A stretch of DNA of 64,000 nt from Lepidodermella squamata (Eukaryota; Animalia; Gastrotricha): assembly GCA_047495785.1 (NCBI GenBank), contig JBLDXI010000001.1, positions 4,216,001-4,280,000 of the forward strand, given 5' to 3'. Positions 1,861 through 28,336 of this stretch are shown piece after piece; positions within the stretch are counted from its first letter, which is position 1; every line of letters starts with the position of its first letter. The translations under genes were made by a program, and so were the position numbers. Under the pieces are notes generated by a model that was not told the DNA's origin, ran no database searches, and saw nothing but the letters and a program-made list of their open reading frames with translations.

Positions 1861-4800
1861 ATCAGTAAATCGAAGAGTTTTGCCATCCTAGTGTATTTTG
1901 TTTATTATTTATTTATTTATTTTTCATCATTTTATTTAATGATTACTTCTTTATGATCTTTAAGAACTCAAAATTTACTCATCTTCCTGTGGGCCTTTTC
2001 GATCTGATCATAATTGATGAGGCTCACCACTATCCGGCGATTTCCTGGAAGCGGATAGTGGACCATTTCCCTGGCAGTAAGAAGCTGTTCCTAACAGCTA
2101 CGCCTTAACCTAAAGGCGAAAAGATTCTGCCAGGAGTGGAAGAATGCTTCGTTTATACGAGACCTCAGGCGATCTCGGATGGAATTATAAGGCCAGTAGA
2201 TTTCTCCGGAGAAGTCGGGAGGTTTGGTGGTAAAGATCCTGCTGAAATTACGACGATGGCTGTTATCAAATTTGGACTACCGTGATAAACTCGTGTTTGA
2301 CATTACTAATAGGTTCTATAGTTAGGCACAAAGCTCTCGTTGTGTGCCAGCAAAAAGAGAGCCTTATTACTATCAGTGAAATGGAGAAAACCTTCAATTG
2401 AATTGGCCATGAGAAGTTACGGTTTATCATGGCGGCATAGCGAATTCTGACTTGGAGACTGCATCAATGAGGAATTTCGGAATTGGCACCATCAGAGTGC
2501 TAATTGTATGCGAATTGCTCAAGGGAGGTTTCGACCACAATCTAATCAGCGTGATCGCAATACATATATCAGAACATTGCCAAGACCAGTCATTTTTACT
2601 TCGCACAGCTGGTTGGACGCGGTGTAAGAAAAGCCTCTCTTACACCGCACAGACGACCCAATCACGGCCATGGTCCTCGCCATTCCAAGTTTAATCAACG
2701 AGAAAACTGTGACTTGTATGACAATGTTCCTGACGATACCGGTGATGAAAATAATGACGAAAGTGAGCCTGAGGAATTTATGCCTTCAGATCAGGAATAA
2801 TACTGAATTGACGCTTCGCAAGTGATTTTAATTTTATTCGATATACCTAAAGTAAGGACTCATTCATTTTTGAACCACTTTTTTACTTAGAATTAGCTCT
2901 GTAATATAAGTGTCGTTACTATTGATTTGCGGCTGCCGGGTTCTGGGTCACGGAAGCTAGGCCGATATCTGCTATAAGACAAAGACTTGTTTACACCCCC
3001 AAATTGTAAGCTAGTAGACGCAGACAATTTAAGACACGCCTCGGCGAGCGTACCATAATCTATATTCAGACATAGCTATCTCATCTTTCAATTCCTATCC
3101 CATGACCAGCGAGAATCGATAATTATGAATTGTATTTTAATCTTTTTACGAATAGGCTTGCGGCTAACGAGTAAAATAAGCATTAAACATCTTTCCCTAA
3201 AGGTCTAAAATCTAAAGTGTCGAAAACCTTGAGCTGTTGAATGTCCCATCGTATATTTGACACATAATTGTTTTGAAGTGTCGTCTTACGTTATATTGCA
3301 GCTAATTGAAAGAACAATGTACGAAAAACGCATGCCTCGATTCGTTCATTATCTTATATTTCATCTTTCATCACACATACGCATGCCGCCCCTGCACGGT
3401 AATTTGGGTTCGGCTGAGCGGGGTAAAATTTGCACACGTCGCGGCTAATTATTTCCGTTTGCTGGCCTGGATTGCTGGCCATCAAATTTGCGTAGCCATG
3501 TGATCAATCTTAGAATTCGCCCCAGAGTAAACAAGACCCTGGCTACGACATAGGTTAGCGCTAAGTTTGGAAAATTCTATGCATTATTTATTTATCGGGA
3601 ACCCTAGTCGCGGCGGTTTATTTTGATTATTCATCGCTAATAAAAAATTTACAAAACTACGCCTTGTGTTTGTTTCTACCGCAGAATTTGCTCATTTTGC
3701 AATAGACGTCAAGAAAATTCTTCATGTCTTCCGTTACAAGGGGTCATTTTTACCTCACCAGGGTTAGAAAGTTCCGCTTAATCTCGCGTTCCAGAGGGGG
3801 GCTGACGTAGGTCCTAATTAGCCATTTGCGTGAGTCCAATAACAGGAGGAATTGTTACACTATAGAGTGCTTACACAAGATTCACAAGTTTTCAAATATA
3901 GCTGATGACTCTGTGCTGAAAATAGCCTAATGCTCCGGATAGGACTAGTTTGAGACACGCATGATTGGCTTTTGTGAATTTTGCGAATATTTCTGTATCT
4001 GTAGGACCCGTAAAATCGCACCTGGGTACTTCCCAATTTCTCATCTGTCTAGTTAACATTCTTTCCTAATGCGTAAAAATTGCATGCAGAAAATAGGAAT
4101 ATCGGTGCAGTAAGCGCAAAAAGCTTACAAGCTCAAATTCAAAATTAAAGCTGATAATTATGTTTACGCTTATATCCAGCGCCTAAATCCTTCACTTATC
4201 TGGCTAGATATAGCCTTAGGAGACTAAAAACAGGGAAATTTTTGTTTTTTGTCTCTTTTCCCGAAAACCGAGCAAAGTCTGGACAAGTAAACCGAGCCCA
4301 GGGCTACGCTACAACTAGAACCTCTATTCTACGTCCTAAGTGCGTCGTCAGAGAAAATCGTCTGCGCTTCGTGTCACTCTATACAGAGTGCTAAAAAGCG
4401 GAAGCACGGTCACACACATATGTTTTGTTTATTAAACTAATGGTCGGGCAAAATGCCGTAGGCGCGGCGATCGAGCGAAAATGCTTCCGCTTGTGAACGA
4501 ACCCTAGCTCGTGAATTTCGGCGAAAAAATGTAGTAGCCGCTCTCTTGCCTTTTTACGCAAATGAAACTTCGCTATCAAAGCTCATTTCCATCAATTTTC
4601 ACCCAAGCGATCACTCAACCTTGATTAATCGTTGAAGTCTCATCTCTAGATTGCCGTGCCAGTTTTTAACTTGAGAAAACGTAACATGCCTCTTTTCGCT
4701 TGGATATCGCCTGTTGGCCGGTCCTCGTTAACTCGAAATCAGTCGGTCGAATCAGCCCCGCCGTGTTTGAAGCCTCGAAAAAAGAATCAAAGCCCTCGTT

Positions 4801-5558
4801 TGGTTCGAAACCAGAGTCTCAACTACAAGTACCGCCATACAGTTTCTTCAGAAACTTCACCAATGAACGAAAAGAAAACACAATCTTCACCAGTTAACAA
4901 CAACTTCATCCCGCAATTACCGCCAGGTAGCTTTGTATCAGCGATTTACACTCAGTCGCCTCAGAACTACAGCCAGAAAGTACTATCGTCACAAAAACCC
5001 GCGATCAGTGACTCGACAAACCAAAATGCAGTGAAAAGTCAATGATATTCCCTCACATTTCTGTTCCCTTTCGACTTTCATTTTTTCTATGACTGAATAT
5101 AAGACGAATAAATCAAATGTTTCGCTATTTTCGTCAGTTTTTTTTACACCAAATCAGGACTCGAAATCTTGTTTATGTTTCGAACTCCAGAAACGAGTAA
5201 CCACACCCGTTTCGAACTTGGTTCATCGATTTTCGGTTCTAAGCAACCTAATATTGTTGTAGTAGGTCGTTACCCCGCTCAGTGCATTATCGATTCTTCA
5301 GCCTCTGAAAGACAGGTCTCATGAAATGCGAGCTTACAGTTTATCTCCATTCTTGTCTCTTCTTTCAGGATATAAAACTTTGAACATTCATTTCAGCGAT
5401 GGTCGGTGCATGTCACCTCCTGATGCGTGCTATGAAAGTTTATTCCAGGCATGTGACAAAGCGTGACATAACAAATGAATGTATTGTTTTGATCCTTAAA
5501 TGCGATAATTACGTCGTGTTTATGGATTCAGCTCAAAGTATCCAATTATGTCTGGTTT

Positions 5559-6716
5559 TCACTGGCCGATTAAAGTGAGAAGAGCTAGCTTGTAATCCCC
5601 GGAAGTTTCATCCTGTCGCGAGAATAAGTCATAAGCTACGCAAATTATCGATCGTCAATCAACTTACTGCGACAGCGCTGTAAAGGGACTTGCCGTATAG
5701 GCGTTGGAATTCGCTCTTTATCGAGCCAAGATCGATGTCGCACCGAGCGACAATGACGCGGATTAGCGCTTTATCTCGCGTCCCTACACCAGCCATGGCT
5801 TCGTACAAACGAGTGGCGAAGTAAGTATGCGGGTTACGAATTGCTTGAACTGGAAAATTCGTTGAAAAACAAACAAAACTCTCAAACGTAATCACAAACC
5901 AACTGCAAGAAGGGTCAGCTCTGTTTTTCCATCGAAGGCGGCTTTGATCACGTCAATGATGTCCTTTTGATAATCCGCTTTGTAAACGTCAAAAATAACG
6001 CGGAGCTGTGAGTAGCTTCGTGACGTTAAAATTGACACGAAATTCTGCTCAGTTGGTGAGTCATGGAGTAATTTTGCATCAACCTGGGCTGAAACAACGT
6101 CAGGAATCGAGTTTCCGGGGCGGTTGCAGGCTAGCAGTGCGAGGAGAAGCTTCTGAAAAGCGCCGCTTGTATCGCCCAGCACGTCTACCTCAAGAGCACG
6201 TCCGTACACTGAAAGGCAAGCATTCATTCCAGATTAAAAAACTGCGAAAATATATGGTATAGCTTCGCCTTCTCATTCTCACTCTTGAAATTATGATATG
6301 ATTTGAAAATAATCCTCACTTTGTCTGTAATTCTGTTCAATAGCTCTGAGTTCTTCGCTTGATCTTGTGCAGACGATTTCGACCAGGCAGTTCGCATCGG
6401 TTCCGCCGTTCTCAATCGCGTCGTGGAGCTCAAAAGCAGCCAATTCAACTGGGGTCTTCAACAACCGCTCCATGACCCACCAGAAACCTCCGCTCGTCTC
6501 ACTGTCAACTTCCTTATCCAAATCAACCTTGTAGATCTGCTTGTAGGCCTTCTCGATCTCTGACCGTTGTTGCCATGATCGCTTGCATAAGATACTCACG
6601 ATGGCCTCCTCATTCGTCCCAATGCCTTTCATGGCATTGTACAGTACCTCGCAATCCTTCTGAGCGTTGAAGTCGGCAGCCGCTCGAACAGTTGGATTGT
6701 AGTAGTCGGTCGACAT
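5559..6716 (-). CDS. Annexin copy 1 (short N-terminus, repeat III loop deleted); 4 exons
   Basis: Exons about 6716-6320, 6208-5900, 5849-5668, 5612-5559 with GT-AG introns. Motifs MKGIGTNE, GGTDANCLVEI, MAGVGTRD, DETSGDYKLALL. Confidence 0.93.
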
Positions 6717-6788
6717 TGTTTTATGTTGGCCAGCTGTGAAAGATGTTTTCTTGTTGAGCTGTATAATACTTAACTAAGCTCTCTGTAC

Positions 6789-6917
6789 GTGAAAAGCACA
6801 CAATACCGGCAGAGAGTCATTTGTTGGCTTGGTGCAAAAAAATTGTTATTGAGCAACGTGGTCACACATGAAACCTCGAATCTTCTCACAGTTCTGCAAT
6901 GACGCCATAAACACGAT
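6789..6917 (-). promoter_or_regulatory. Conserved upstream block shared by annexin copies 1 and 2
   Basis: About 130 bp of non-coding sequence (cacaataccggcaga.agtcatttg...aaaaaaattgttattgagc...tgcaat.acgcc) recurs at about 9831-9960, a similar distance upstream of the copy 2 ATG. Confidence 0.55.
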
Positions 6918-7086
6918 GAGATGACCAAGAAAATACCTAATTTGCCATAGTTTGGAAAGAGTTCCTTCCGGTGTTGGGTACAGAAATATGATCTTGGAGA
7001 TCGAGGATCATATCAAGGACGGCGGCTACTTATGCGCAGTCAAAGTTTAATAACAGAGAGAAAATATTCAAAGTATATTAAGGTTA

Positions 7087-10166: not shown

Positions 10167-11633
10167 TTAACTAGCGGCAACGCACGAGCTGACGGTTGGG
10201 TCGTAGGGTCCGGCGCCTGGGCAGCAGCGGTAGGATCGGCTAGGGTCGTAGACGGGCTTGAAGCCCTGGCAGCAGGTGTAAGTGGTCGAACAGGCCGTGG
10301 TCATGTCCATGTTTTGAACAGGCTGAGATTCCTGAATGGGTTGGTTAATTTGGACAGGGATGATCGGCTGCTGTTGTTGTTGCTGAGGGATTTGTTGTTG
10401 TTGTTGCTGCTGCTGGAAGGGGTTGAAAGCAAAGAAGCGAGAGAAATCCATGACGTTGCCCATTGCAGGCAGAGTCGAGTCATTACAGCGAGACGAAGTC
10501 ATGTCGTAAATCGAACGGCCACAGCAAGCTAAAAGAAAAATGTTCGGTTGAAGTTATGAGTGGTTATGAGTGAGTCAATGACCAATGACTTATCATACAG
10601 TGTTGAACTATTGAACAAAAAAGTACACACTGCTGGTTTGGAAAGTTTCATGGTTAACTTCACAGGATTCCTATCGCACTCTAATCATAACCCTAACTCC
10701 AGCCATCGCCAGGAAACACACTACGCCTGTGATCTTATTCATAAATCAAATCCTTTCCCCAACTGTTATTCTACTACGAGAGAGTGTTTAACTGAAAAGC
10801 TCCTATTGCCTATAAGGCGAATGACCTAGTTTTTGAAGCTTATGATTTCAGCTTGATAACAACTTTTACTTCTTCGAGAATCTTACCATATTTGCTGAGG
10901 GCATTAGACTCCTGGAAGAGATACTGAACTCCATTGCAAGTCAGCGAGGCCGCAGCCGGAGGAAGTTGGGGTTGCTGTTGTTGCTGAGGCTGCTGGACCG
11001 GAACTTGAACGGGCGCCGGAGCTTGCTGGACTGGAATCGACTGCGGCACCTGTTGCGCAGGTGTCGAGTCTCTGCCCACGCATTGGTGCGTTGGCCAGTG
11101 GTAAATCTGCTGGCCACAGCACGAATAGTACTGAGCCTGGTCGACAGGAACTAAAAACCTTCCGCCAGCACAGTTAATCGTAGCCATTTGGGGCTGAGCC
11201 TGGCGCTGTTGTTGTTGCTGCTGAACAACAATTGGCTGTACCATTACAGCGTCTGAAGGCTGGCTCTCATAACGGTAAACAGGAACTGTCTGTTGGGGCT
11301 GGGCGACTTGAACCGGTTGAATCTGAACGAGTTGAACCGGCTGATTTTGAGGCTGAGACGAAGACTCGACAACTCGAATTTGCTGGATAGACCTCTGGTT
11401 CGTATTGTCGTTCCCGCCCGTGTATTGCATCGGGATCTGCACATTTCCGAGTAGGGCGGATATGAGGGGTGAGTTAAGGCGTAAATTCTGAGGATCTTGC
11501 TGCGAGTTCGGGTCAACAAATTGAGCTAGACCTATTCGGGCTTTCCGTGAAATTCGAAAAGTCAAATTGCGGTAGTGTCCTTACCTTGCGAGGTCAGTAG
11601 GCTGACGAGAAACGGCAGTGTGATGAATTTCAT
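10167..11633 (-). CDS. Secreted Gln/Pro/Val-rich protein with di-cysteine (galaxin-like) repeats, paralog A
   Basis: Exon 1 signal peptide MKFITLPFLVSLLTSQG|LAQ. Exons about 11633-11585, 11531-10887, 10529-10167. Modules C.G..Y/F......Y.CCG..IY.....C and C-terminal CCQG...YDP....CCPGAGPYDP....C. Confidence 0.85.
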
Positions 11634-14440: not shown

Positions 14441-15679
14441 TTATTCATTTGTAGTAGGGCACACAGCTACATTAGGATCATAAGGCCCTACTCCAGGGCA
14501 GCAAATTAAGTTTCCATCTGGATTATCAACAGCTGGGTAACTTTCGCAACAAATGTTCCTACTAGGACAGTTTCCATTTTCATTTCTTGGAGGACTGGGC
14601 TTCGGTTTACTTCGACAAATATCCATTCTTATGTCGTAAATCTCGCCGTTGCAACAAGCGTAGTACTTCCGTTCATCTGATGGCACCCAATGCTTGTAAG
14701 CATCACATACCATAAGAAATGGAACTGGGATCGGGGTTCCATTGGTTGTTGTAGTTCTCGGCCGTTCCGGGGCGATATTCCCATCAATGCACTTTTCTGT
14801 GGGCCAAAAATAAGCTTCTGTTCTACAGCATGCGTAAAATTGGAAGTCAACCGCTGACATCGAGTAACTTTTTCCGTTACAAAACAAAAATCGAATATTC
14901 GGATTATGAGTAGTCGAAGTTGTTGTTGTTGTAGATCTGGTCGTTCGGCGGATTACCGAATTAATTGAGCCCGACAGAGGCATAACTTTTGGCTGGTCAG
15001 AATTGAATGAAACACATCGATCGTTGACAATGTGATAGACTGAAGAGCCACAGCAGCGATAGTTTGGGTAAGGAACTCGCCATGCGACGCCATCACAAAC
15101 GATCTCAACTCGTTCGCTATGTAAGGAATTATTATAACGGAAAAGCAAGGTAAAAAAAGCAACTAACAGATAGACTGGACGGTGAGATGACTGCTCCATA
15201 GGTAGCACCCTTACCCCATTGAAAATATTGCCATTTGCACAATATTGGAGATCGGGAAAATATGACCGCTCCCCACAGCACATTTTTCTGACAAAAAATG
15301 AGAAAATTACAGGAACACGTGACATCGCGGGTGGGCGACCGGACACCTGCCTAAAATAGAAACAAATGGCGTATGATTTCGTAAGAGTTTGATGGAGCTC
15401 AGTTTTTCCGGTGGAGATGCAAAAAATGGTTACACGCCATTTGTTTCTTCTTTGGGCAGAACATCGCGACAAGATAATTCAGTCTTACGTTCCAGCTGGG
15501 TCGTAATGTTTAGCTGAGCCGCAACATAGAAAATTCGCCGGGCATGGAATTCTTCGGCCTAAGGAAGGATTTCTTCCATTTGAATTACCTGAATAAGGTC
15601 CGAACACGACTGTCCTTTGAGAGTCAGAAGTACTCAAGAGTGAGAACAGCGTCAAAATGAGGAACATAGTCGCATTCAT
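14441..15679 (-). CDS. Secreted di-cysteine (galaxin-like) protein with Thr-rich linkers, paralog C
   Basis: Signal peptide MNATMFLILTLFSLLSTSDS. Repeated CCG/YACC modules and the shared C-terminal CC......CCPGVGPYDP....C. Internal exon boundaries (15490-15110) are uncertain. Confidence 0.8.
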
Positions 15680-16208: not shown

Positions 16209-18574
16209 TCAGTTGCCGATCAAAGCGAGCAGGGACTTCTTGTAATCGCCCGAGGTTTCGTTCTCAACGGCTTTGTACAGAGACTTCCCATACAGGCGTT
16301 GGTATTCGCCCTTAATAGCTCCAAGGTCGAAATCAGCTCGCGAAACGATAATGCGCAAAAGTTGATCGTCATGGGTGCCGGCACCAGCCATAGCGTCCTG
16401 CAAACGAGTTGCAAAGTACAGGGGACGGTTGCGAATGGCCAAGACTAAGGTGAAAAAGAAATAAATGGAAATTACAAATAAGTTCAAATAAAGACTTACT
16501 GACAGCGACCAAAGCGTGGGAAATGTCTCCACTGAACTCGGACTTGACGACATCGACGAGGTCCTTTTTATATTCGCGAGCGTAGACATCGAAGATGACT
16601 CGCAATTGGCTGTAGCTACGGCCAGCAAGGATGGCATTGAAGCGAACTTCATCAGTTCCAGTAATCTTCTGACCAGCGTCGTACAGGGCCTTCGCATCCG
16701 CAGCAGCTGCGGCCATGTCAGGGTGCGAATCGGCCGGGCGATTGCAGGTCAGCAGCGACACAAGGAGTCGGCGGAAATATCCACTCGTATCGCTTGACAC
16801 GTCCTTCTCCAAGGCCTTTCCATACACTAAAGGCACAGGAATTGATAGAAATTTCATAGTTTGAGTAAAAACCTACTTGTCTTGTAGGCAGCTTCAATCG
16901 CTCGGAGCTCTTCGTTAGATTTCGTGCAGATAACCTCAACCAGGCAGTCTTCATCAGTCCCAGCGCCTGAGATAGCCTTATGCAGTTCGTAGGCCGCCAG
17001 TTCGGTCGGGGTCTTGAGAAGACGGGCGAGGACCTTGTGGAAATGCCCGCTGGTCTCGCTCTCAACTTCCTTCTCCAAATCTTTGCCGAATAGTTGCTTG
17101 TAGGTGCGTTCGATTTCATTACGCTGCTGCCACGAGCGTTTGCATAAAACAGCGATTAAGGCACCTTCGTCGGTACCGACTCCTTTCATAGCCTTCCGCA
17201 GGACCTCGCAATCCTTCTGGGCATTGAAGTTGGGATCAGGCAGGACGGTCGGAGCGTAGATTTCAGTGCTCATGTTTTGTGGAACTGGAGGTTGGTAGTA
17301 TAAATGAGATTGAGGATTGCCTATGAAATGAACAGATTTAATAGTGGAACAAAGTAAATCGGGCCTGGGGCAAACAAAGCAATTCTAGCGGGTCACATTC
17401 TGTTTACTGAGCCTAAGAACTGTTTTTTTCTCTAGGATCCGCAATACATTTTAATCTAATATGAGCACTGTGAGATGAAAAATATGGAATAATTTTACGA
17501 CTGACTCAAGAGCGCTCTTCGACCAATAGAAAGATTTTTTAAGAGCGAAAAACCCATCACTGCAAGCTGAGAGAATTATAGATTTTCCCAAGACATAAGG
17601 AATGCTTCAATCCCTAGAGGCTGAGAATAAAGAATGTCTATCAATTTATGTCACCCACTGAACGGTCCGTGGACTGATTTCAGTAGAAAACTCAGAAGTC
17701 TAGCATCTTTGATCAATAAAAGTATAAGGTAATGTTGATCATATGTCAGCGAATTTGACAAATTTTATGTCTACATACATGTGTATAAATGGCTGATAAC
17801 GCAATTTGAGCTAATGATAAATATAATGCTGAAAATAGAGTCAAACGCGCTGAAAGATCTTAGGGAAATTGGAGAAGACAGGCTTATCTATCGCGTTGAC
17901 GTCTTAAAAAGGCCGTGCTCACTCATCGTCTCAGTCTGCTGAGTCACGCTGCCTTCGTGTTATGAAATAGCACCTGTTCGCCCCTCATCTTGCAGTAAAA
18001 TGATCATTATATTATGATGAGGAGACGCAAAACACTGCTGCATGAATAATTAAGTAAAATAAAATCAATGAAGCTACGGCGGGCTTAGTCATTGAATTCC
18101 GGCTTTAGCAAAAAGTAGGTAGAGTAAATAGGCTGAAAAAAGCTTACCGTATGGCTGTTGAGGCGGGTAGCCAGCAGCAGCTGGCGGATATCCGGCTGGC
18201 TGTGGAGGATATCCGGCTGGTTGAGGCGGGTAACCAGCTGGTGGATAGCCGAGTTGTTGCGGCGGATAACCTGGTTGTTGAGGTGGATAACCAGGCTGTT
18301 GAGGTGGGTAACCAGGCTGTTGGGGTGGGTAGCCGGGTTGCTGAGGTGGATAGCCAGGATAACCCGGTTGAGCGGGAGGATAACCCGGGGCCTGCGGATA
18401 ACCAGGTGCAGCAGGTGGATAGCCGGGAGCTCCAGGGGCCGGTGGGTATCCTGGATAACCACCCTGAGGAGGAGGATAGCCCGGGGCTGCCGGGTAACCA
18501 GGTTGGCCAGGTGGAGGATAACCAGGCTGACCAGTTGGCGGATATGGTGGGTAACCTCCAGGAGGATACGACAT
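16209..18574 (-). CDS. Annexin copy 3, annexin A7/A11-like with GYPP-rich N-terminal tail
   Basis: Exons about 18574-18148 ([10 protein letters not shown]...), 17320-16877, 16826-16500, 16444-16209, splicing in frame. Four intact repeats ([24 protein letters not shown]). Confidence 0.93.
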
Positions 18575-19231: not shown

Positions 19232-22200
19232 TCATCGCAGGTCGTCATTCAGGCTATCATCGCATTGGCTAGGTTGATTTTCTTCAATTGGCTCTAATGA
19301 ACGCGGCATTTCAGCTGTTTCATTACTGCCCTGGTGAACAATCCCGTTTTGAGGCCGTTCCTCGAAAACGTCTTCAGTATTATAGCCGCGGAATGATTCA
19401 TCCTGTGAAGTCGCAGTTTCCTCCGTTGGTTGCCTCGAGATTGTTAGCCGCGAATTCGGGACATAAAGGTACTCGGATCCCGCGGTTTCTTCAGTAGGCT
19501 GACGGGATAAATTAAATCGATAGTCGGGTACGAGTAAATAATTGTCATATGCAGCTGTTTCCTCAGTTGGTTGGCGTGATAGCTTCCATCTCACAGCTTC
19601 CTCTCCCTCCATGCCTCCACTAACCACGGTTGGATCGATATAGGACCTCCCAGTGCTCTTCTTAACATTGCTTGGGCTTTTACCAACAGGGGACGAAGCT
19701 TTGCTGGCGAATTTCTTCTGCGCTAAACTCGTATGAGATCTCCTACCCGGGCTATTCACACCCTGCTTACACGTACTAATCAGGAGATGAGTATCGGGGT
19801 GACTAGTACACGTATTCGAAATGTGACCCCTGCCGCCGCAATTTGTGCATTTGATGGTGATGGCGCTAACGAAAAGACCTCCGATAATGCCCTCTGTGTG
19901 GCGTCGGGCGGGTTTAGCTTTGCCATCTTGTAGTTTCTTCGTTTCTTTTTTGGTGAAAAGAGCGCGGATGACGTCGGTTTCGTCCATTTTCTCATCTCCA
20001 TCCTTATTGCGTTTTTCGACGCTTTTTCGGATTACGTAACCAACGAGATATTTCGTGAGTAAGTACTCGACTAGGACAATCAGGAAGCATAGGACTAGAC
20101 CCATAAGAAGTAGGACGAAAGCAGACGTGAAATTGGGAATTCCGAGCTGAAAACTCTTGTTAGATTCGGCCTGTTTCCGGTACTTGCAAGCTCCTGATAG
20201 CCAATATTCCGACAGACGTTGTAGAAACCCTAAACCGATATCAAGTCAAAATAAAATCAGAGTTGAACTTCAGAAGCTTACCGTTATATTGGTACTCAAC
20301 GATGAATTTCTCGAAAACCGGTAGCCATGTTGAGCCTCGAGGAAACCCGATTCCATAACCGGTCATAGCGTACCATTTCCCGACAACGTTCAACTCGCAT
20401 TCATTGTCGTGACTGCTTTTGTACTCCAGCACAGTTGCGTCGTAAATAAACGCGTCTAATTGACCTGTTTTCAGGGCTTTGATGCCTTTTGACGCTGAGC
20501 TTTGGTTGAACTGCCGCATGTATTCGAAAGTATCTGGAAAATTGTTCTTAATAAAAGCTTCCGTAGCTCCAGATGAGACGGTTCCAAACTTGTAAGGAGG
20601 CTGTTTCGTATAAGGATTCTTCAACTGTAAAGATTGACATAAACTTTGAAATCATTCATATTTCTAGGAAGTTTGGTTTACTCTATAATCCTCTAATCCA
20701 TTAAAATCGTAGAAATCGTCTTTTGCAATCATGAATACGGCAAGATTGGCCATGTAAGAGGATGAAAAGATCACGCAAAACATGCCCCAGACTCCCATCA
20801 TTAACTTCGCTCCAAACGTAGTGGGCATATCTACTTTAACGGCTGCTTTGAAAAGCATAGCCCAAACAAGCCAAAGTGAAGCGAAGACCGAAAATCCACC
20901 TGCAGTTAACGGGTAGGTTGACAAGTTGGCCCACCAGTGAAGTTGAAACTTACCAGGATTGCTCTGAGTCTTCGCTGGAGCAAATAAGTCTGAGTGGTTT
21001 TTAGTTGAGATGCGTTCAAAGTAATACACAGATAGCACTACGGCAGTTACACATCCGGCCAAAATCGCGAACCAAGCAAGAGGGGAGAAAGGCTCTGAAA
21101 GTTACATTTCAAACCAAGAGCAAGATCAGAGAGCAAATCAAACCTAGCAAAGCCATTGGAGATATCGCACCGGGTCTAACTGCAACCATTATTGTGATGC
21201 CGGTTTCTGGAAATCAAAGTTGAGCTGAGAACAGAATATGGATTATCAATCAAACCAAGAAAAGGTAGAGTGAAATCAATGGCTTGACTTCTTTCCTTGT
21301 TAATCTTCAAAGATGTTAGAACTGTCAGAAAAAAGATAATGGGCTGCTCTTCTCAAAAAATGTTTGAAAGTTACCCAAGTCGGCCTCCTCGTCCAGCAGA
21401 GCTCTTACAAGACCGTTCCACTCCCCAGTTAACGGAGACCTTCCGCCCCATTTTCGATCTCGAACCTCAAAAATGTGATACTTGAACCCGATATCAATCG
21501 AGAGCCTCTGAAGCAGATCAATGCAGAGACCAGAGCAGCAAGCGTAATGCCCAACCAAAGTGCCGTTCACTTTTCGCTCAGCAACAGCTTCCTCCGCATT
21601 TTCATGCCCTTCTGACGTCATGTTGCCATGCATCTCAGCTTCTTCCTTCGACTCAACGATTGGCGCTAGTTCGCAGCGAACTCCGTTATTCGGACACTCG
21701 CCATTAGCATCTGGAGCTCCGTATATCACATACCTAAAAAATATAATAAGTATAAAAAGGTGCATTTAGACTTAGGAGTTCTAATCGAACTCACGGAGGC
21801 TCCTCAAGGGTGACAATATTCAAAAACACAGAGCGGTCTCCAGCGCGGGCTGTTCCTCGAATTAGAGACCATGCCTTGTAATTGGTCGCATTCTCCCGAA
21901 ACCCGTTATGCTCCGACCAGTTCCCCAGCCTTCGCCACCGTAAGCCAGTGTCCATATAGGACATGACTATAGACCGTCCAATTTGTGATATCGCCTGCTC
22001 ACGGACCGAATGATTAGCCGACGCTTCCTTCGCTTCGATCAAGTATTTGTAAAACAAATGGCGATACTGCCAAGTTTCAGGTTTGCCCTCTCCACATAGG
22101 CCAGATGGTGAGATATTTGTATGGTTATCGGCAAGCCCTGGCAATGAGGCAAGACGTCTAACAGCCCTAGTCCATAATTCAGTCGCGGCTTTGATGACCT

Positions 22201-24519
22201 CCAACTGGGCATCGAATGAAGTTTGGTAAGATGCTACAACCGTACCAGGCGCAATGTTAGTCGTCGATTTCCGCCCACTTGGAACCTTAGCATCAAGGTG
22301 TTCCATACTGTCGCCCATTAATGGTCTCCCGCCGATCCATAGGTAATTTTCTGACGTCATTCCAAGAATCCTCGCCTCGCCGAATATGTCATTAGCCTCG
22401 TCGACGTTACTCCACAGGATGATGACATTCGCTCGGGTTGAGTCGCGGATGAACATGAGCTCGTTCCGGATGAGCCTTCGCCATTTCGAGGGGGCTGATA
22501 TGCGACCACCTGGGAGTCGAACGATATGGCGAATAACCGGCTGGAAGTGAGCGTCGTGGACGTCGACTCGTCTTGATGAGAATTTCCGGTTTCTATCAGC
22601 CATCTCACCAATCATCCTGAGAGAAACATAAACAAATAAAATTATGATCCTGTGTGAGGTTGGACGTTCCGGATGAGTGAAATCAAACCTTGACATTTGA
22701 TCACCTCATTATGCAGAGTTCGAGAGAAAGCTCGTATCATCCGCTGACCTTATCATGTGATGTCTTTACCGGGTCGTTTTTTGCATGTTAATTAGTACGA
22801 AACTACCACTGCACACAACTTTTTAATTGTCGCGACCTCTCTTCGGCAAAATGAAGTGTTTCCTCCTGATTTTAGTTATCTTGAGTTCTTACGTTGTCGC
22901 TTATTATGACCCTTATAAGGAATTCAGACGTGTAGAATTGGATAAAGGTTTGCATTATTTCCCTTAATCAAGTTTCCTAAACTCTGCTCTCCGATTGCTA
23001 GAGATGGCTTGCAAGTTCAGGCCGTGGAATACGACTTGTGTCTCGCACATTTCTAAAGAAACACCCATGACGGTGAACGAATGTGCCCATTATTGCGACG
23101 AACGTCCTGAGTGCCGGTCGTTTCGAACCGATTTCTACAACAGTGTTTGCTACCTATACGACAAGTTTGGATGCAGGCGACGCGTTGCACCGCCGCCGAA
23201 TAGCGAAGTCTACGTTTTCAAATGGTCAAGAAAGGTCGTCGACAAAATCACATGGTGTTAAGGACTCAACGAACGATGAAGATCATTGATATTACCCCAT
23301 AGTCATTAGACCGTGACCTATACCCATTGATTACCTAATAGCAATAAAACCTAATAGAATTTAGGTCGCGCAAATCAATAAAATTTGAGCCAATAATTAA
23401 TTGTTGGAATTTTTTTCAAAACGTGTCAAAAAGGGTCTCCATACTTATTGATTTTTGCTCTGGTGTAAAATTTGAAAAAAATAATAATTAAATTAATTAA
23501 TTAAAATCATTAAATAAAAATAAAAATCATGAATAAAATCACATTTTAATTTAAAATTTAATCTCAAAAAAGTTAGTTATTTTTTAAGGTGTAGGGACCT
23601 ACCGAATAAATTCTTCCGCACCCGGCGTTTGCATGACTGCCACCAAAGTGTAAGTTTTAAACCGTTGCGATCTCAAAAAGTCGATGATAGCCGCGGCCTG
23701 GTCAAGAATAGTCGGCGCCATGAGCAGCAGACCGCGCCGCGCCGTCGCCGCCTGGCCCCCTGTCGTGGTCATATCCTCGATCTGATGCGCCGCCGATGAC
23801 CACAACATGGATGGCACGCCAACATTATTAGCTAGCGTTGTGATGAAAGTTGCCAGGTGACTTTCGTCATCACTTTGAACCTTCTTGTCGATTATTATGA
23901 GGACGGCATTCAGGCCTTTTGCGGCTGTTGAGCAGAACACATTCCTCACAGCTTCAGCGACTGATTGACCCCCGGTCTAGATCAAAATTCCAAAAATTAA
24001 AAAAAAGCAGTCGTTAAAAATGTAAATTTAAAATTTAAAAATTAATAATCGGAAATTTTGAAAAATTTTAGGATTTTGAAATTTTGAAATTTTTTTAATA
24101 AATATTGAAATTTTAAAAATGCTGCGAAATTTATGGGAGAGGCTCACATAGACTGGGTTGACTTGAAATCGCGGCTCGACAAGTCGCGGAACTTGCATCA
24201 CTGAACTGTGTCCATCGTACAGGAACGCCGGTTTGACACGCTTCATTGAACTCGGCGGCTGGAGATAACGCTTCAGCTGTTCCCGAATCTTCGCATTCGT
24301 CAAATTTTGATGCGGTAACACAAACGCGATTGAGACGACTGGCGATGCCTTTGTCAGGGCTGCTAGGGTGTCTAAGGCGTTGGTGGGTGATGCGAGGTCA
24401 TCGATTGAGCTGCCATAAAGGGTCGGGTCAAGGTTATTGAGACTAGCATTACTAGTCACTTGGGCGAATATTAAGCAAAAATTAGCCGTAAAGATGTGTA
24501 AAAGTGTAAAAATCTTCAT
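19232..24519 (-). CDS. Nmdar2: Ionotropic glutamate receptor, NMDA GluN2-like subunit (divergent)
   Basis: Signal peptide, ATD, S1 (VTLEEPP|YV, CCSGLCIDLL, WNGLV, SLKINKER, FLETGITIMV), M1-M3 (WLVWAMLF, SYMANLAVFMI), S2 (FGTV..GATE, LDAFIYDATVL, MTGYGIGFP) and M4. About 9 exons. Confidence 0.88.
22851..23261 (+). CDS. Small secreted PAN/apple-like Cys-rich protein nested antisense in an NMDAR intron
   Basis: Exon 1 22851-22947 (MKCFLLILVILSSYVVA signal) splices in phase 1 to exon 2 about 23002-23261. Pattern ECAHYCDERPECRSF.......CYLY. Confidence 0.8.
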
Positions 24520-25181: not shown

Positions 25182-28100
25182 TCAGTCACCCAACAGAACC
25201 AGCAGCGCCTTCTTGTAGTCACCCGACGTGTCAGACTGAAATAAAATCATCGAATACATGTTTAATATTTTTTTTATTCTGTTTTTATTACCGAAATATC
25301 TTTGGCTAAGGCGCGGCTATACATGCGCTGGTATTCCACTTTGATAGCGGCCAGATCAACGTCGCAACGCATGACCATAATGCGGATCAGCATTCGGTCT
25401 TTCGTCCCAGCTCCGGCCATAGCATGGTGCAGTCGGCTTGCAAAATACGCCTGTTTATTTCGGATCGCTCCAACTAATCGCGAAAATCAAATTCTTTCAG
25501 CAATAAATTACATTTACAATTGGGATAAAATTATAACAAAATTTGGACAGTTTTGAGTTGGGAAAAATTGATGCCCACAAGATAATGGAACTAGCCCATT
25601 GGTAAATTCCCATTCCGGTAAATCAATCAGCCATTTACGTTTTGCAAAAATTTGGAAAATTGAAAAAGAAATGTAGAAATCGTAAATCGTAACCGATATT
25701 ATGTCATATATAAATAGCACACTATCGAATTAAACCATTTAAAAAATTTAATTTTACTCTAAAAATTTGCTGTCAATGAGGCATTTATATTTCCGACTTA
25801 CCAACTGCAAGCAGGCCGCTGCAAATATCGCCGCTGAATTCCGACTGGATGACATCAGCAATGTCCTGCTGATATTCTCGTTTGTAAATATCGAAAACAG
25901 CGCGAAGATGGGCGTAGCTTCGCTGGCACAGGATGGCGTTGAATCGACTCTCGTCGGTGCCAATGCGATTAGCACCAGCTTTATACAGCGCCTCAGCGTC
26001 GGCGGCTGCCGCTGCCGGGTCAACGTGGGATGACTCATTGCGACTGGCCGTCAACAGAGCAACCAACAGGCGTTTGAAATGGTAACTAGTATCGCCTGCT
26101 ACATCGCTTTCCATCGATCGTTTGTACACTGAAAACAAGGAAAAACACATGGGTAGAAAGAACTTTTGGCTCTGCAAATTGGAAGTCTCACATTTTCGGT
26201 GACCATCGAAAAAATAACGAAAAAATGACGAACGAACATGACATGAAATTCAAAATAAGAAGGATTTTTCAAATTTTTAAAAAAATTAAAGAAAATTAAA
26301 AAATTAAACGGTCGATTTCGAAAAATTTATCTGATCGCAAGAGAGAGATACCGATTTATTGGTGGTCTGCGTTACATAATTCTTAGTAACATTGCCTTTA
26401 AGACACAGAGATATGAATTAATTAACTTCAGTATAGGTGATATTTCTTAATAATAAGTATTGGTTATTTATCGTTGGTTGGAATATAGATGGTGGTGAAG
26501 AATTCGAATACTGTCTTTGAGGGCCTGTGAAGCGATATCGATGGCTGTGCCGGCGTTGATTCCATAATCGCGCAGAAGTTTTACGGCTTCTGTTGTCAGG
26601 GATCCGCGGGCACCAATGTATAGTCCATGTACTTCTATTGAATCTAGGTTGTATGCTTCGCAAATAAACTTGCTACATGGCTCGTATATTGCGCGTTTTT
26701 CCGCATCGACCAATTCGAATTGGTTTTGCGAAGACTCGCATCTGATAGTTGGATCAATAATTATTCCTGTTCGGCTTCCTTTTCGGAGGGATAGGATATC
26801 AAAGCGGCGAGAAGAGCCGTTGCTGGCTACACAATGTCCTTCCTCGGTGACATTATATCCCTGGCCGCGCAATTCGCTCGCTATTTTCTGGCGAATTTTG
26901 TTATGTCTCGAAGTGATTAGCAACGAGTTGTAGGGGCAGGCGCCAAGGACGTGAGCAAGAGATTCAATCTCAGCGCCGCATCGACGACACTGGTTTCCGT
27001 CCTGACTGACACCTGGTACCCCTCTAACCGGAGCCGTGTTTGTAGACATTTTGATCGCCATGGTCCATTATAATAAATTTCAAATTGTCAATTGACAATT
27101 TTAAACGAATTTTAAGAATTTTAAAATTTCTAAATATCAAATTCATCAAGATTTGAAAAATTTTAGAAAATTTGTAAAAATTCAAAATGCTATTTTTTTT
27201 ATTTTTTTTTTTAATTTCAAATGGATTTTTTTTAATTTAAATAGAACAAAATTAAATTAAAAAATTTGAAAATCTCAGTTCAAATATTTTTTGAATTTTT
27301 TTGGTTGCTGGGCTTTTTCCCATGAATCTTTAATAACTTTATTTGAAGTATCGAAATGTCTTACTTTCTTGGTATTTGTGCTTGATCGCCGTCAGTTCCG
27401 CGTTGTTCTTCGTGCAGATCACCTCGATGAGGGCCTCCTCATCGGTCCCAGCACCACAAATCGCCTCGTGCACCTCATAGGCCGCTAACTCGACCGGAAC
27501 TTTGAGCAGAGCCAGCAGGACCTTTTTGAAATTGCCACTCGTCTCACCGGCGATTTCCTTCTCCAAATCCTTGCCAAACATCTGTTTGAAAGTACGCTCA
27601 ATCTCGTTTCGCTGCACCCAGTTGCGCCGGCACAGGATGTTGATCAAGGTGGCTTCGTCTGTTCCGATGCCTTTCATGGCCTTGCAAAGGGCCGAGCAGT
27701 CCTCGGCGGCGTTGAAATTGGCCTGGGGGCGGATCGATGGCGCCAGAATGTCCATTTCAGGCTCTCCTGCGTACATTGTCGGAGCTTGCGGGTAGAAATT
27801 CGAAGGTGGAGGGTGAGCAGAGCCGGGTGCGTACGATTGAGGGGGGCCTGATGCTGGATTCAGCGAGTAAGGGGCGCCGTATGGTGCTGATTGCGGGTGC
27901 GAAGGGGCCGACGGCGGGGGCCCGGGTGGATAGCCACCTGATTGAGGTGGATATCCGGGCTGCTGAGAAGGATAGCCAGGTTGCTGTGGTGGGTAACCGG
28001 GCTGTTGAGGCAGGTAACCAGCGGGCGGGGCTTGAGGATAGCCGGGTGCTGAAGTTGGCGGGGGCGGGTAGGCGGCTGGTGGGTAGTATGGGCCGGATGG

Positions 28101-28336
28101 TGGGACCCCGGGTGGCGGGGCGCCGTAGTAGGGCTGTTGGGGCGGAGGATAACCACCGGCTGGGTACATTGCAGTAGGCGCTTGTTGGTAAATCACAGTA
28201 TGCGGAGGGGCGGCCTGCAAAAAATGGGAAATAAATTATACAATTATTCTGAATTTTGAATTATTCGAATTTATTCAGATAAAATGGTTAGACAATTTCG
28301 AGACTTTTTCAATAAGTTATCTATTAAACGTACCAT
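25182..28336 (-). CDS. Annexin copy 4, GYPP-rich N-tail (A7/A11-like)
   Basis: Likely ATG at 28336-28334 directly before a donor. Exons about 28214-27365, 26128-25802, 25473-25292, 25235-25182. Four annexin repeats; ends SDTSGDYKKALLVLLGD*. Confidence 0.88.
26330..27068 (-). mobile_element. 5'-truncated non-LTR retrotransposon (R2-superfamily type: CCHC plus restriction-like endonuclease) in an annexin 4 intron
   Basis: ORF 26468-27061 contains CRRCGAEIESLAHVLGAC, RHNKI, SRRFDIL, IIDPTIRCE, EKRAIYEP, GLYIGARG. There is no RT domain. Confidence 0.85.

Follow-up and report, generated by a model that had tools for sequence, protein, structure and literature searches.

Our favoured reading, to which we assign a probability of roughly 0.6, is that the window, a 64,000-nucleotide stretch of Lepidodermella squamata DNA, carries an intact, transcribed GluN2-class gene belonging to an old, lineage-specific subfamily with lysine at the pore constriction (K-type), and that subunits of this kind would form Ca2+-poor, weakly Mg2+-blocked channels with GluN1. 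The gene model comprises ten exons in which all introns are GT..AG, the phases are consistent and no in-frame stops occur. All parts of an ionotropic glutamate receptor (iGluR) can be read from it: the amino-terminal domain, the bipartite ligand-binding domain, M1, the M2 loop, M3 and M4. Searches with the gene were run exon by exon, by reference, and Pfam finds ANF_receptor (weakly), Lig_chan-Glu_bd and Lig_chan on successive exons. The features are as follows.

19232..24519, minus strand: whole GluN2-like gene (ATG 24519-24517, TGA 19234-19232, 10 exons, 1,251 codons)
24148..24519, minus strand: exon 1, signal peptide followed by the first part of the amino-terminal domain (from translation)
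23603..23976, minus strand: exon 2, amino-terminal domain (aligns to the L043 orthologue)
21795..22616, minus strand: exon 3, amino-terminal domain to the start of S1 (…TLEEPP), weak Pfam ANF_receptor match
21375..21733, minus strand: exon 4, first part of S1 (Pfam Lig_chan-Glu_bd, E = 6.3e-15; PDB matches)
21256..21321, minus strand: exon 5, S1 motif LTSLKINKERSQAIDFTLPFL, with Ser and Arg equivalent to GluN2A S511 and R518 (from translation)
21144..21206, minus strand: exon 6, end of S1 (ETGITIMVAVRPGAISPMALL; orthologue alignment)
20954..21094, minus strand: exon 7, pre-M1 region and M1 helix (~21080-21018; from translation)
20682..20899, minus strand: exon 8, M2 pore loop and M3 helix (Pfam Lig_chan, E = 1.6e-14)
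20847..20849, minus strand: pore Lys codon AAA at the Q/R/N (N) site, equivalent to GluN2A-N614 / GluN2B-N615
20733..20759, minus strand: gate motif SYMANLAVF, T3 to M and A8 to V (numbering cross-checked with PMC10973091)
20282..20624, minus strand: exon 9, S2 lobe (SSGATE, FIYDATVLEY; top PDB matches are GluN2A ligand-binding domains, E = 2e-28)
19232..20229, minus strand: exon 10, covering the last part of S2, the M4 helix (~20140-20057) and ~270 residues of cytoplasmic tail
19802..19855, minus strand: CCHC zinc-knuckle motif KCTNCGGRGHISNTC in the cytoplasmic tail (Pfam zf-CCHC, 21.0 bits against a cut-off of 20.8)

The initial annotation had assigned the gene to the GluN2 class, and GluN2 is the best match for the exons of the pore, of S1 and of S2. 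The top PDB matches for exon 8 are GluN2D, GluN2B, GluN2C and GluN2A (E ~2e-12), and the L043 orthologue, which comes from environmental contigs, finds GluN2 as the best PDB match for its S1-M1 stretch (8e-35) and aligns to GluN2D over S1; for the short first piece of S1 taken alone, kainate receptors score as well as GluN2. The five glutamate-binding residues S511, R518, T690, Y730 and D731 of GluN2A are all aligned and present, and the Arg of INKER, the Thr of GATE and the Asp of YDA are kept, as had been noted earlier. At the position of GluN2A S689 the window gene has Ala, and at that of T513 it has Lys. We considered this second lysine as a further oddity and rejected it, since SLKIN or SLKIT is the norm in invertebrate GluN2-like proteins.

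Two other families with basic pore residues can be set apart from the window gene. GluN3A and GluN3B, with Gly-Arg or Arg-Arg at N/N+1, likewise belong to the NMDA family and naturally have a basic residue in the constriction, but they bind glycine and are nearer to GluN1, whereas the window gene has a Lys-Ala pore, carries a GluN2-type FIYDA motif and is closest to GluN2 for the exons tested; in the PDB searches, GluN3 chains score far below GluN2. Arginine-edited GluA2 and GluK1/2 belong to other iGluR classes and acquire Arg at the Q/R site through A-to-I editing of a Gln codon. In the window gene, a GluN2-class subunit, the genome itself encodes Lys (AAA here, AAG in relatives), and the Asn alternative resides in separate paralogous genes.

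The M2 loop reads WLVWAMLFKAAVKVD in the minus-strand translation, and positions 20682-20897 of the window, minus strand, translate as GFSVFASLWLVWAMLFKAAVKVDMPTTFGAKLMMGVWGMFCVIFSSSYMANLAVFMIAKDDFYDFNGLEDYR. Compared with PDB chains by phmmer, residues 2-70 of exon 8 align gaplessly to full-length GluN2A 599-667 and GluN2B 600-668. This alignment sets K17 on GluN2A-N614/GluN2B-N615 (the N site), A18 on N+1, M49 on GluN2A-T646 (T3) and V54 on GluN2A-A651/GluN2B-A652 (A8). The lysine therefore sits on the Q/R/N site of the solved GluN2A-D chains, where the initial annotation had placed it, and M3 is SYMANLAVF at 20759-20733 with T3 changed to M and A8 to V, as first read; seven of the nine residues of SYTANLAAF are retained. 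The further claim that the lysine is genomically encoded withstood a check against sequence error: public run X1 spans the codon with no difference listed, the nearest listed change being synonymous (20877). No A/G difference at this codon is listed in the RNA contigs, which give thin coverage of the pore exon and are contigs only, so some editing of the AAA codon is conceivable.

The domain order of the window gene (amino-terminal domain, S1, M1, M2 loop, M3, S2, M4, tail) is that of vertebrate GluN2A-D. These subunits are also its best PDB matches in the pore, S2 and S1 exons. The window gene retains the Arg, Thr, Asp and Tyr of the glutamate site and, at the GluN2B-W607 position, the Trp that opens the WLxW pore motif, and its genome holds a GluN1 partner gene. 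It departs from the vertebrate subunits in having Lys-Ala at N/N+1, where all four vertebrate GluN2 subunits have Asn-Asn, in the gate (SYMANLAVF vs SYTANLAAF) and in its short, unrelated tail with a CCHC zinc knuckle. Invertebrate GluN2-like proteins whose N site is Gln, Gly or Ser resemble it in their xAAV pore (Ala at N+1), in SLKIN within S1 and in architecture.

At least six GluN2-like genes of the K type are present in the same genome, together with three of the N type and a canonical GluN1 (L020; 1e-89 to GluN1), which has the canonical NSGIGEG pore with Asn. The window gene is one of several K-type genes and not a lone exception. HSP70 of this genome has its best named matches at only 74-78% identity, scattered among molluscs, arthropods, tardigrades and vertebrates. 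The pore lysine is found in nine genes, six in this genome and three in a related species, with both AAA and AAG codons; that it is strictly kept despite these synonymous changes suggests that the residue itself is selected. The L043 orthologue retains the lysine (AAG), the SYMANLAVF gate and the CCHC tail, in which the counterpart motif is KCKNCGGRGHISTVC, and M4 and the membrane-proximal part of exon 10 are kept in the paralogues. Over the pore and S2 exons the window gene and L043 are 80% identical, with pN of 0.11-0.12 and pS of 0.84-0.87; synonymous sites are saturated, so these values do not yield an exact dN/dS. Judged from these comparisons, the pore lysine is beyond chance and is under purifying selection across the paralogues and the orthologue.

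In trees built from each of two exons, the window gene pairs with L043 (100/99), the K-type genes cluster with one another and those of the N type fall in a separate group; that the K-type genes are one clade is moderately to weakly supported (94/76 with 51 columns, 46/88 with 59). The change of T3 to M occurs in both N-type and K-type genes and is therefore a trait of the lineage, not tied to the lysine. The change of A8 to V is confined to one K-type sub-clade, and the K-type genes on C15 and C75 retain AAF. Alanine at N+1 does not single out the window gene either, being found in the N-type paralogues and in almost all relatives outside vertebrates.

Transcription and splicing bear on whether the gene could be the product of faulty assembly or sequencing, or a pseudogene in decay. 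The exon 1/2 joint across intron 1 (24147-23977, 171 nt) is spliced in RNA run X2, and a fragment in the same run agrees in 29 of 30 bases with the K-type paralogue on C7. The intron between exons 7 and 8 (20953-20900, 54 nt, GT..AG) has a counterpart at the corresponding position of the L043 orthologue; its junction in the window gene has no supporting reads in the public RNA, where depth is low, and these are the weak points on which an artefact could draw. Such a reading is contradicted by the same Lys codon in run X1, by ten clean exons without stops, by the splicing of intron 1, by pN far below pS against L043 and by the lysine in eight other genes. We reject it on these grounds as exceedingly improbable.

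Coincidence detection by NMDA receptors rests on the asparagines of the pore constriction. In cryo-EM structures, the pore is narrowest at Asn615 of GluN2B, which takes part of the water off Ca2+ and maintains the water network of Mg2+, with two N615 side chains in direct contact with Ca2+ (PMC13246513). Human GluN2B-N615K and N615I lose Mg2+ block, GluN2A-N615K both loses Mg2+ block and lowers Ca2+ permeability, and triheteromers with one copy of GluN2A-N615K show intermediate effects (PMC6871362). Low Ca2+ entry and weak Mg2+ block in K-type receptors are a reasonable inference, because block is lost in human GluN2B-N615K and N615 forms the constriction. In GluN2B-N615K the lysine is at exactly the homologous residue, while GluN2A-N615K lies at N+1. 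These human variants are pathogenic de novo changes in an otherwise Asn-Asn pore; the lysine of the window gene, by contrast, is fixed, selected and wild-type for a whole subfamily, with Ala at N+1.

We propose that the subunit joins GluN1 as a heterotetramer, an assumption from family membership, in which two lysines would replace both constriction asparagines, the residues that dehydrate Ca2+ and bind Mg2+ with its water. Such a pair of lysines would leave channels with little Ca2+ flux and weak or no voltage-dependent Mg2+ block. The arrangement would be a hard-wired analogue of arginine-edited GluA2, achieved by gene duplication instead of RNA editing, and the receptor's calcium signal would depend on whether K-type or N-type GluN2 is used. 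The initial annotation was right to draw attention to the gate: T646 and A652/A653 variants change agonist potency and kinetics in human receptors (PMC10973091), and the substitutions at the same two positions, T3 to M across the lineage and A8 to V in the sub-clade, probably shift potency and kinetics here as well.

How much the lysine weighs depends in part on what the N site tolerates. Across 149 database representatives of GluN2-like proteins, the site is G in 56, Q in 34, N in 30, K in 11, S in 10 and R in 8, and Asn-Asn occupies N/N+1 in 29. Among these sequences, asparagine is not universal at the GluN2 N site and basic residues recur, while a recent paper calls the N site of NMDA2A "otherwise invariable" (PMC12226733). 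The earlier statement that insect NR2 has Q and vertebrate GluN2 has N needs widening: outside vertebrates the site is not fixed as Q or N, G being the commonest residue. The other K- and R-type database fragments sit on ENA metagenome contigs. One cluster member, P0161, lies on a bacterial-looking contig and was discarded as spurious. Word-index searches with the full-length relative P0002, using the whole protein and the pore region, found relatives in ENA only. The motifs MLFKA, LFKAA, SYMANLA and related ones do not occur in the supplements of PMC6307864 or PMC12226733, which is weak evidence that the K-type family is unpublished.

The invertebrate N site varies (G, Q and S); in these lineages GluN1 may dominate permeation and the lysine may weigh less than in mammals. 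Taken further, the lysine would be mild, with the GluN1 asparagines and pore geometry dominating, so that K-type and N-type receptors behave much alike and the paralogues differ by expression, kinetics or tail signalling. This would fit the tolerance of the N site for G, Q, S, K and R, the canonical GluN1 pore of the genome and the smaller effect of Gly at the N site in NR2 than in NR1 (PMC2974739). We consider it unlikely, given that Lys is charged, unlike the small or polar residues, that the N615 pair touches Ca2+ at the narrowest point (PMC13246513), that Mg2+ block is lost in GluN2B-N615K (PMC6871362) and that the lysine is strictly kept in nine genes. With Ala at N+1 in the N-type paralogues too, Mg2+ block may be poor even in N-type receptors, and the two types may differ less than assumed.

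Arginine-edited GluA2 shows lower conductance, retention in the ER and limits on assembly. By analogy with it, K-type subunits could be modulatory or poorly conducting, or active only in triheteromers with N-type GluN2, a picture that the presence of both types in one genome would suit. GluN3 with G/R or R/R at N/N+1 gives Ca2+-impermeable, Mg2+-insensitive receptors and provides a dominant-negative precedent (PMC2974739), and the intermediate behaviour of triheteromers with one GluN2A-N615K copy points the same way (PMC6871362). Six diverged, long-kept K-type paralogues with intact ligand-binding and gate regions nonetheless exceed the need for one brake, and we judge this picture quite improbable.

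Returning to Ca2+-poor, weakly blocked K-type receptors, the conserved, expressed Lys-type subfamily beside Asn-type paralogues would amount to a natural experiment on NMDA receptors without Ca2+ entry or Mg2+ block, and would supply a wild-type setting in which to view the human disease variants GluN2B-N615K and GluN2A-N615K. The broader finding, that the N site of non-vertebrate GluN2-like proteins reads G, Q, S, K or R, may matter equally. We suggest only tentatively that some invertebrate lineages may set Ca2+ permeability and Mg2+ block by swapping Lys, Arg and Asn GluN2 paralogues, a counterpart of Q/R editing which, on a short tree, appears to have several independent origins. Some anion permeability has been reported for arginine-edited kainate receptors. 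On this suggestion, K-type receptors would be glutamate-gated channels that pass little Ca2+ and are independent of voltage, and they might let some anions through as well.

The receptor gene runs on the minus strand from an ATG at 24519 to a TGA at 19232 and comprises 10 exons and 1,251 codons. All of its introns are GT..AG with consistent phases, no exon contains an in-frame stop (0/10), and eight of the nine introns measure 49-171 nt, with intron 2 reaching 986 nt. When we searched this model exon by exon, the Pfam domains ANF_receptor, Lig_chan-Glu_bd and Lig_chan fell on consecutive exons. The gene and its surroundings contain the following features.

Features of the receptor gene and its neighbors in the window
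20682-20897 (-), pore exon
19802-19855 (-), CCHC zinc knuckle KCTNCGGRGHISNTC in the cytoplasmic tail (Pfam zf-CCHC, 21.0 bits; cut-off 20.8), kept as KCKNCGGRGHISTVC in the orthologue on environmental contig L043
19400-19590 (-), distal tail in which the peptide SRQPTEETA occurs three times, each time after a short stretch containing Tyr; not seen in the shorter tail of the L043 orthologue
about 22851-23261 (+), small gene nested in intron 2, encoding a signal peptide and a PAN/Apple-like domain that scores weakly (20.7 bits, slightly under the cut-off); RNA run X2 shows its 54-nt GT..AG intron (22946-22999) spliced out, at a depth above that of the host gene
16854-18574 (-) and 27339-28220 (-), flanking annexin genes whose amino-terminal repeats are long and rich in Pro, Gly and Tyr; the latter matches Pfam Annexin at 3.8e-36
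14441-15472 (-) and 10840-11565 (-), Cys-rich ORFs in which C..YY.CC motifs recur; the former matches Pfam Galaxin-like repeats at 2.8e-12

The initial annotation of a GluN2-like subunit with intact ligand residues was borne out. A phmmer search of all PDB chains with the pore exon returned GluN2D/B/C/A as top matches (E about 2e-12 to 6e-12), the S2 exon best matches GluN2A ligand-binding domains (2e-28), and the S1-M1 stretch of the L043 orthologue best matches GluN2D (8e-35). The glutamate-binding residues Ser511, Arg518, Thr690, Tyr730 and Asp731 (GluN2A numbering) are all kept (5/5). A lysine occupies the Thr513 position (SLKIN), as is usual in invertebrate GluN2-like proteins whatever their pore type.

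The translated pore exon reads GFSVFASLWLVWAMLFKAAVKVDMPTTFGAKLMMGVWGMFCVIFSSSYMANLAVFMIAKDDFYDFNGLEDYR, and its residues 2-70 align without gaps to full-length GluN2A 599-667 and GluN2B 600-668. In this alignment a lysine, encoded by AAA at 20849-20847 (-), occupies the GluN2A-N614/GluN2B-N615 position, the first of two asparagines and the Q/R/N site of M2 (hereafter the N site), and is followed by alanine at the next position (N+1). The M3 gate motif, SYMANLAVF, carries Met at GluN2A-T646 and Val at GluN2A-A651/GluN2B-A652, the third and eighth residues of SYTANLAAF (T3 and A8). This numbering is consistent with the seventh motif position given as GluN2A-A650C/GluN2B-A651C (PMC10973091), and because the two agree, the lysine, its codon and both gate substitutions had been described correctly. 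The lysine pore and altered gate are thus confirmed.

Two public sequencing runs, seen as thinly covered contigs, bear on the reality of the gene. X1 contains 83% of its sampled words and covers it along its whole length; the sole change listed near the pore is synonymous, at 20877, and none falls on the Lys codon, which speaks against a sequence error there. X2 contains GT..AG spliced joints and is therefore RNA. One of these, joining 23976 to 24148, is exactly intron 1, indicating that the gene is transcribed and spliced; RNA support for the exon 7/8 junction was absent from the thinly covered X2 contigs, in which RNA editing of the Lys codon may also have gone unseen. An X2 fragment reading LVWAMLFKAA, with an AAG codon, matches a paralogue at C7:240k at 29/30 bases, so a second gene with lysine at the N site (K-type) is also transcribed.

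We searched the source assembly (121 Mb, 151 contigs) with the pore exon and Pfam Lig_chan, then read the loci, and found at least six K-type GluN2-like genes.

Ionotropic glutamate receptor genes of the source genome
K-type GluN2-like: the gene in the window (contig C1)
K-type GluN2-like: three genes in tandem (C7)
K-type GluN2-like: a near-identical pair (C15/C75)
N-type (asparagine at the N site, LFNAA…) GluN2-like: three genes (two on C24, one on C74)
GluN1: one gene, L020, with canonical pore WGVLLNSGIGEG (1e-89 to GluN1)
AMPA- or kainate-like: several genes

A check for another, Asn-type GluN2 thus found three, and the K-type set has both these and a canonical GluN1 partner alongside it in the genome. 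The Thr-to-Met gate change is a lineage trait, since the N-type genes (SFMANLAAF) have it as well as most of the K-type ones; locus L008 and database protein P0063 retain Thr. Among the K-type genes, those on C1 and C7 have Val at A8, and the C15/C75 genes retain AAF. Four kainate/AMPA-like loci, L015-L018 (C24:3178079, C42:3072092, C25:2028808, C26:294692), carry a genome-encoded Arg at the Q/R site, with Gln-Asp after it (GAFMRQDVDISPRS). Many receptor loci form near-identical pairs on different contigs (L004/L005, L013/L014, L015/L016, L017/L018), which could be haplotigs or products of recent whole-genome or segmental duplication. The gene in the window has no such twin.

An exhaustive pore-exon search of 1.84 billion representative proteins returned 417 at E up to 0.001. 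Among 149 GluN2-like matches, counted as 50%-identity clusters that include many fragments rather than as species, the N site holds G (56), Q (34), N (30, including 29 NN), K (11), S (10) or R (8); nearly all those outside the NN (vertebrate-type) group have Ala at N+1. The GluN2-like fragments P0010, P0030, P0062 and P0118 naturally read ANLATF, with Thr at A8, a substitution also carried by GluD2 of the Lurcher mouse; in P0010 and P0062 this Thr is combined with an N-site Lys.

The closest relatives, P0003 (80%), P0002 (72%) and P0063, lie on ENA metagenome contigs. On one such contig, L047, a pair of K-type genes stands in tandem, like the C7 array. The L043 orthologue (3717-7049) has the pore LVWAMLFKAAVKVD, with Lys as AAG, and the gate SYMANLAVF. 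It shares just two of the nine introns, 7 and 8, which flank the M2-M3 exon at matching positions, implying that introns were gained or lost on a large scale as these related species diverged. Identity over the pore and S2 exons is 80%, and pN (0.11-0.12) lies far below a saturated pS (0.84-0.87), indicating strong, long-lasting purifying selection.

Exon-level trees, which are short (51 pore and 59 S2 columns) and call for cautious reading, place these genes further. In the pore tree the lineage forms one clade (99/89) that divides into an N-type (100/98) and a K-type group (94/76). In the S2 tree the gene is sister to L043 (100/99), C7:231k is joined to P0063 (99/98), the N-type genes form a group (94/93), and the K-type genes again come together, at a weakly supported midpoint split (46/88). 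These groupings make the K-type paralogues older than the divergence of the two species. Elsewhere in the pore tree, the remaining K/R sequences from the database occupy no fewer than three positions: within a Q-type group (100/95), within a G-type group and in a mixed K/R clade (99/89). This scatter suggests more than one origin for a basic residue at the GluN2 N site.

The literature we searched gave no naturally occurring GluN2 whose N-site residue is Lys, and two broad receptor surveys lack the motif in their supplements; this site in NMDA2A has recently been called "otherwise invariable" (PMC12226733). In cryo-EM of GluN1a-2B, the channel is narrowest at the constriction formed by the paired GluN2B Asn615 residues, which are in direct contact with partly dehydrated Ca2+ and keep the water network of the blocking Mg2+ in place, and N615Q weakens the block (PMC13246513). 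Human GluN2B-N615K and N615I lose Mg2+ block, and GluN2A-N615K, at N+1 by our alignment, also lowers Ca2+ permeability (PMC6871362). Receptors of GluN3, with Gly-Arg or Arg-Arg at N/N+1, are Ca2+-impermeable and Mg2+-insensitive (PMC2974739). Variants at GluN2A-T646 and the A8 alanine (GluN1-A653, GluN2B-A652) alter agonist potency, kinetics and divalent permeability (PMC10973091).

The interpretation of the subunit as a whole is partly supported. The main caveat concerns effect size in this background, which may differ from that in vertebrates: invertebrate GluN2 proteins are not uniform at the N site, and even the N-type genes have Ala at N+1. Most likely, the subunit would form with GluN1 a glutamate-gated channel that admits little Ca2+, gates differently and has weak voltage-dependent block. 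The choice between K-type and N-type GluN2 subunits may then play the role that Q/R editing has in AMPA receptors.
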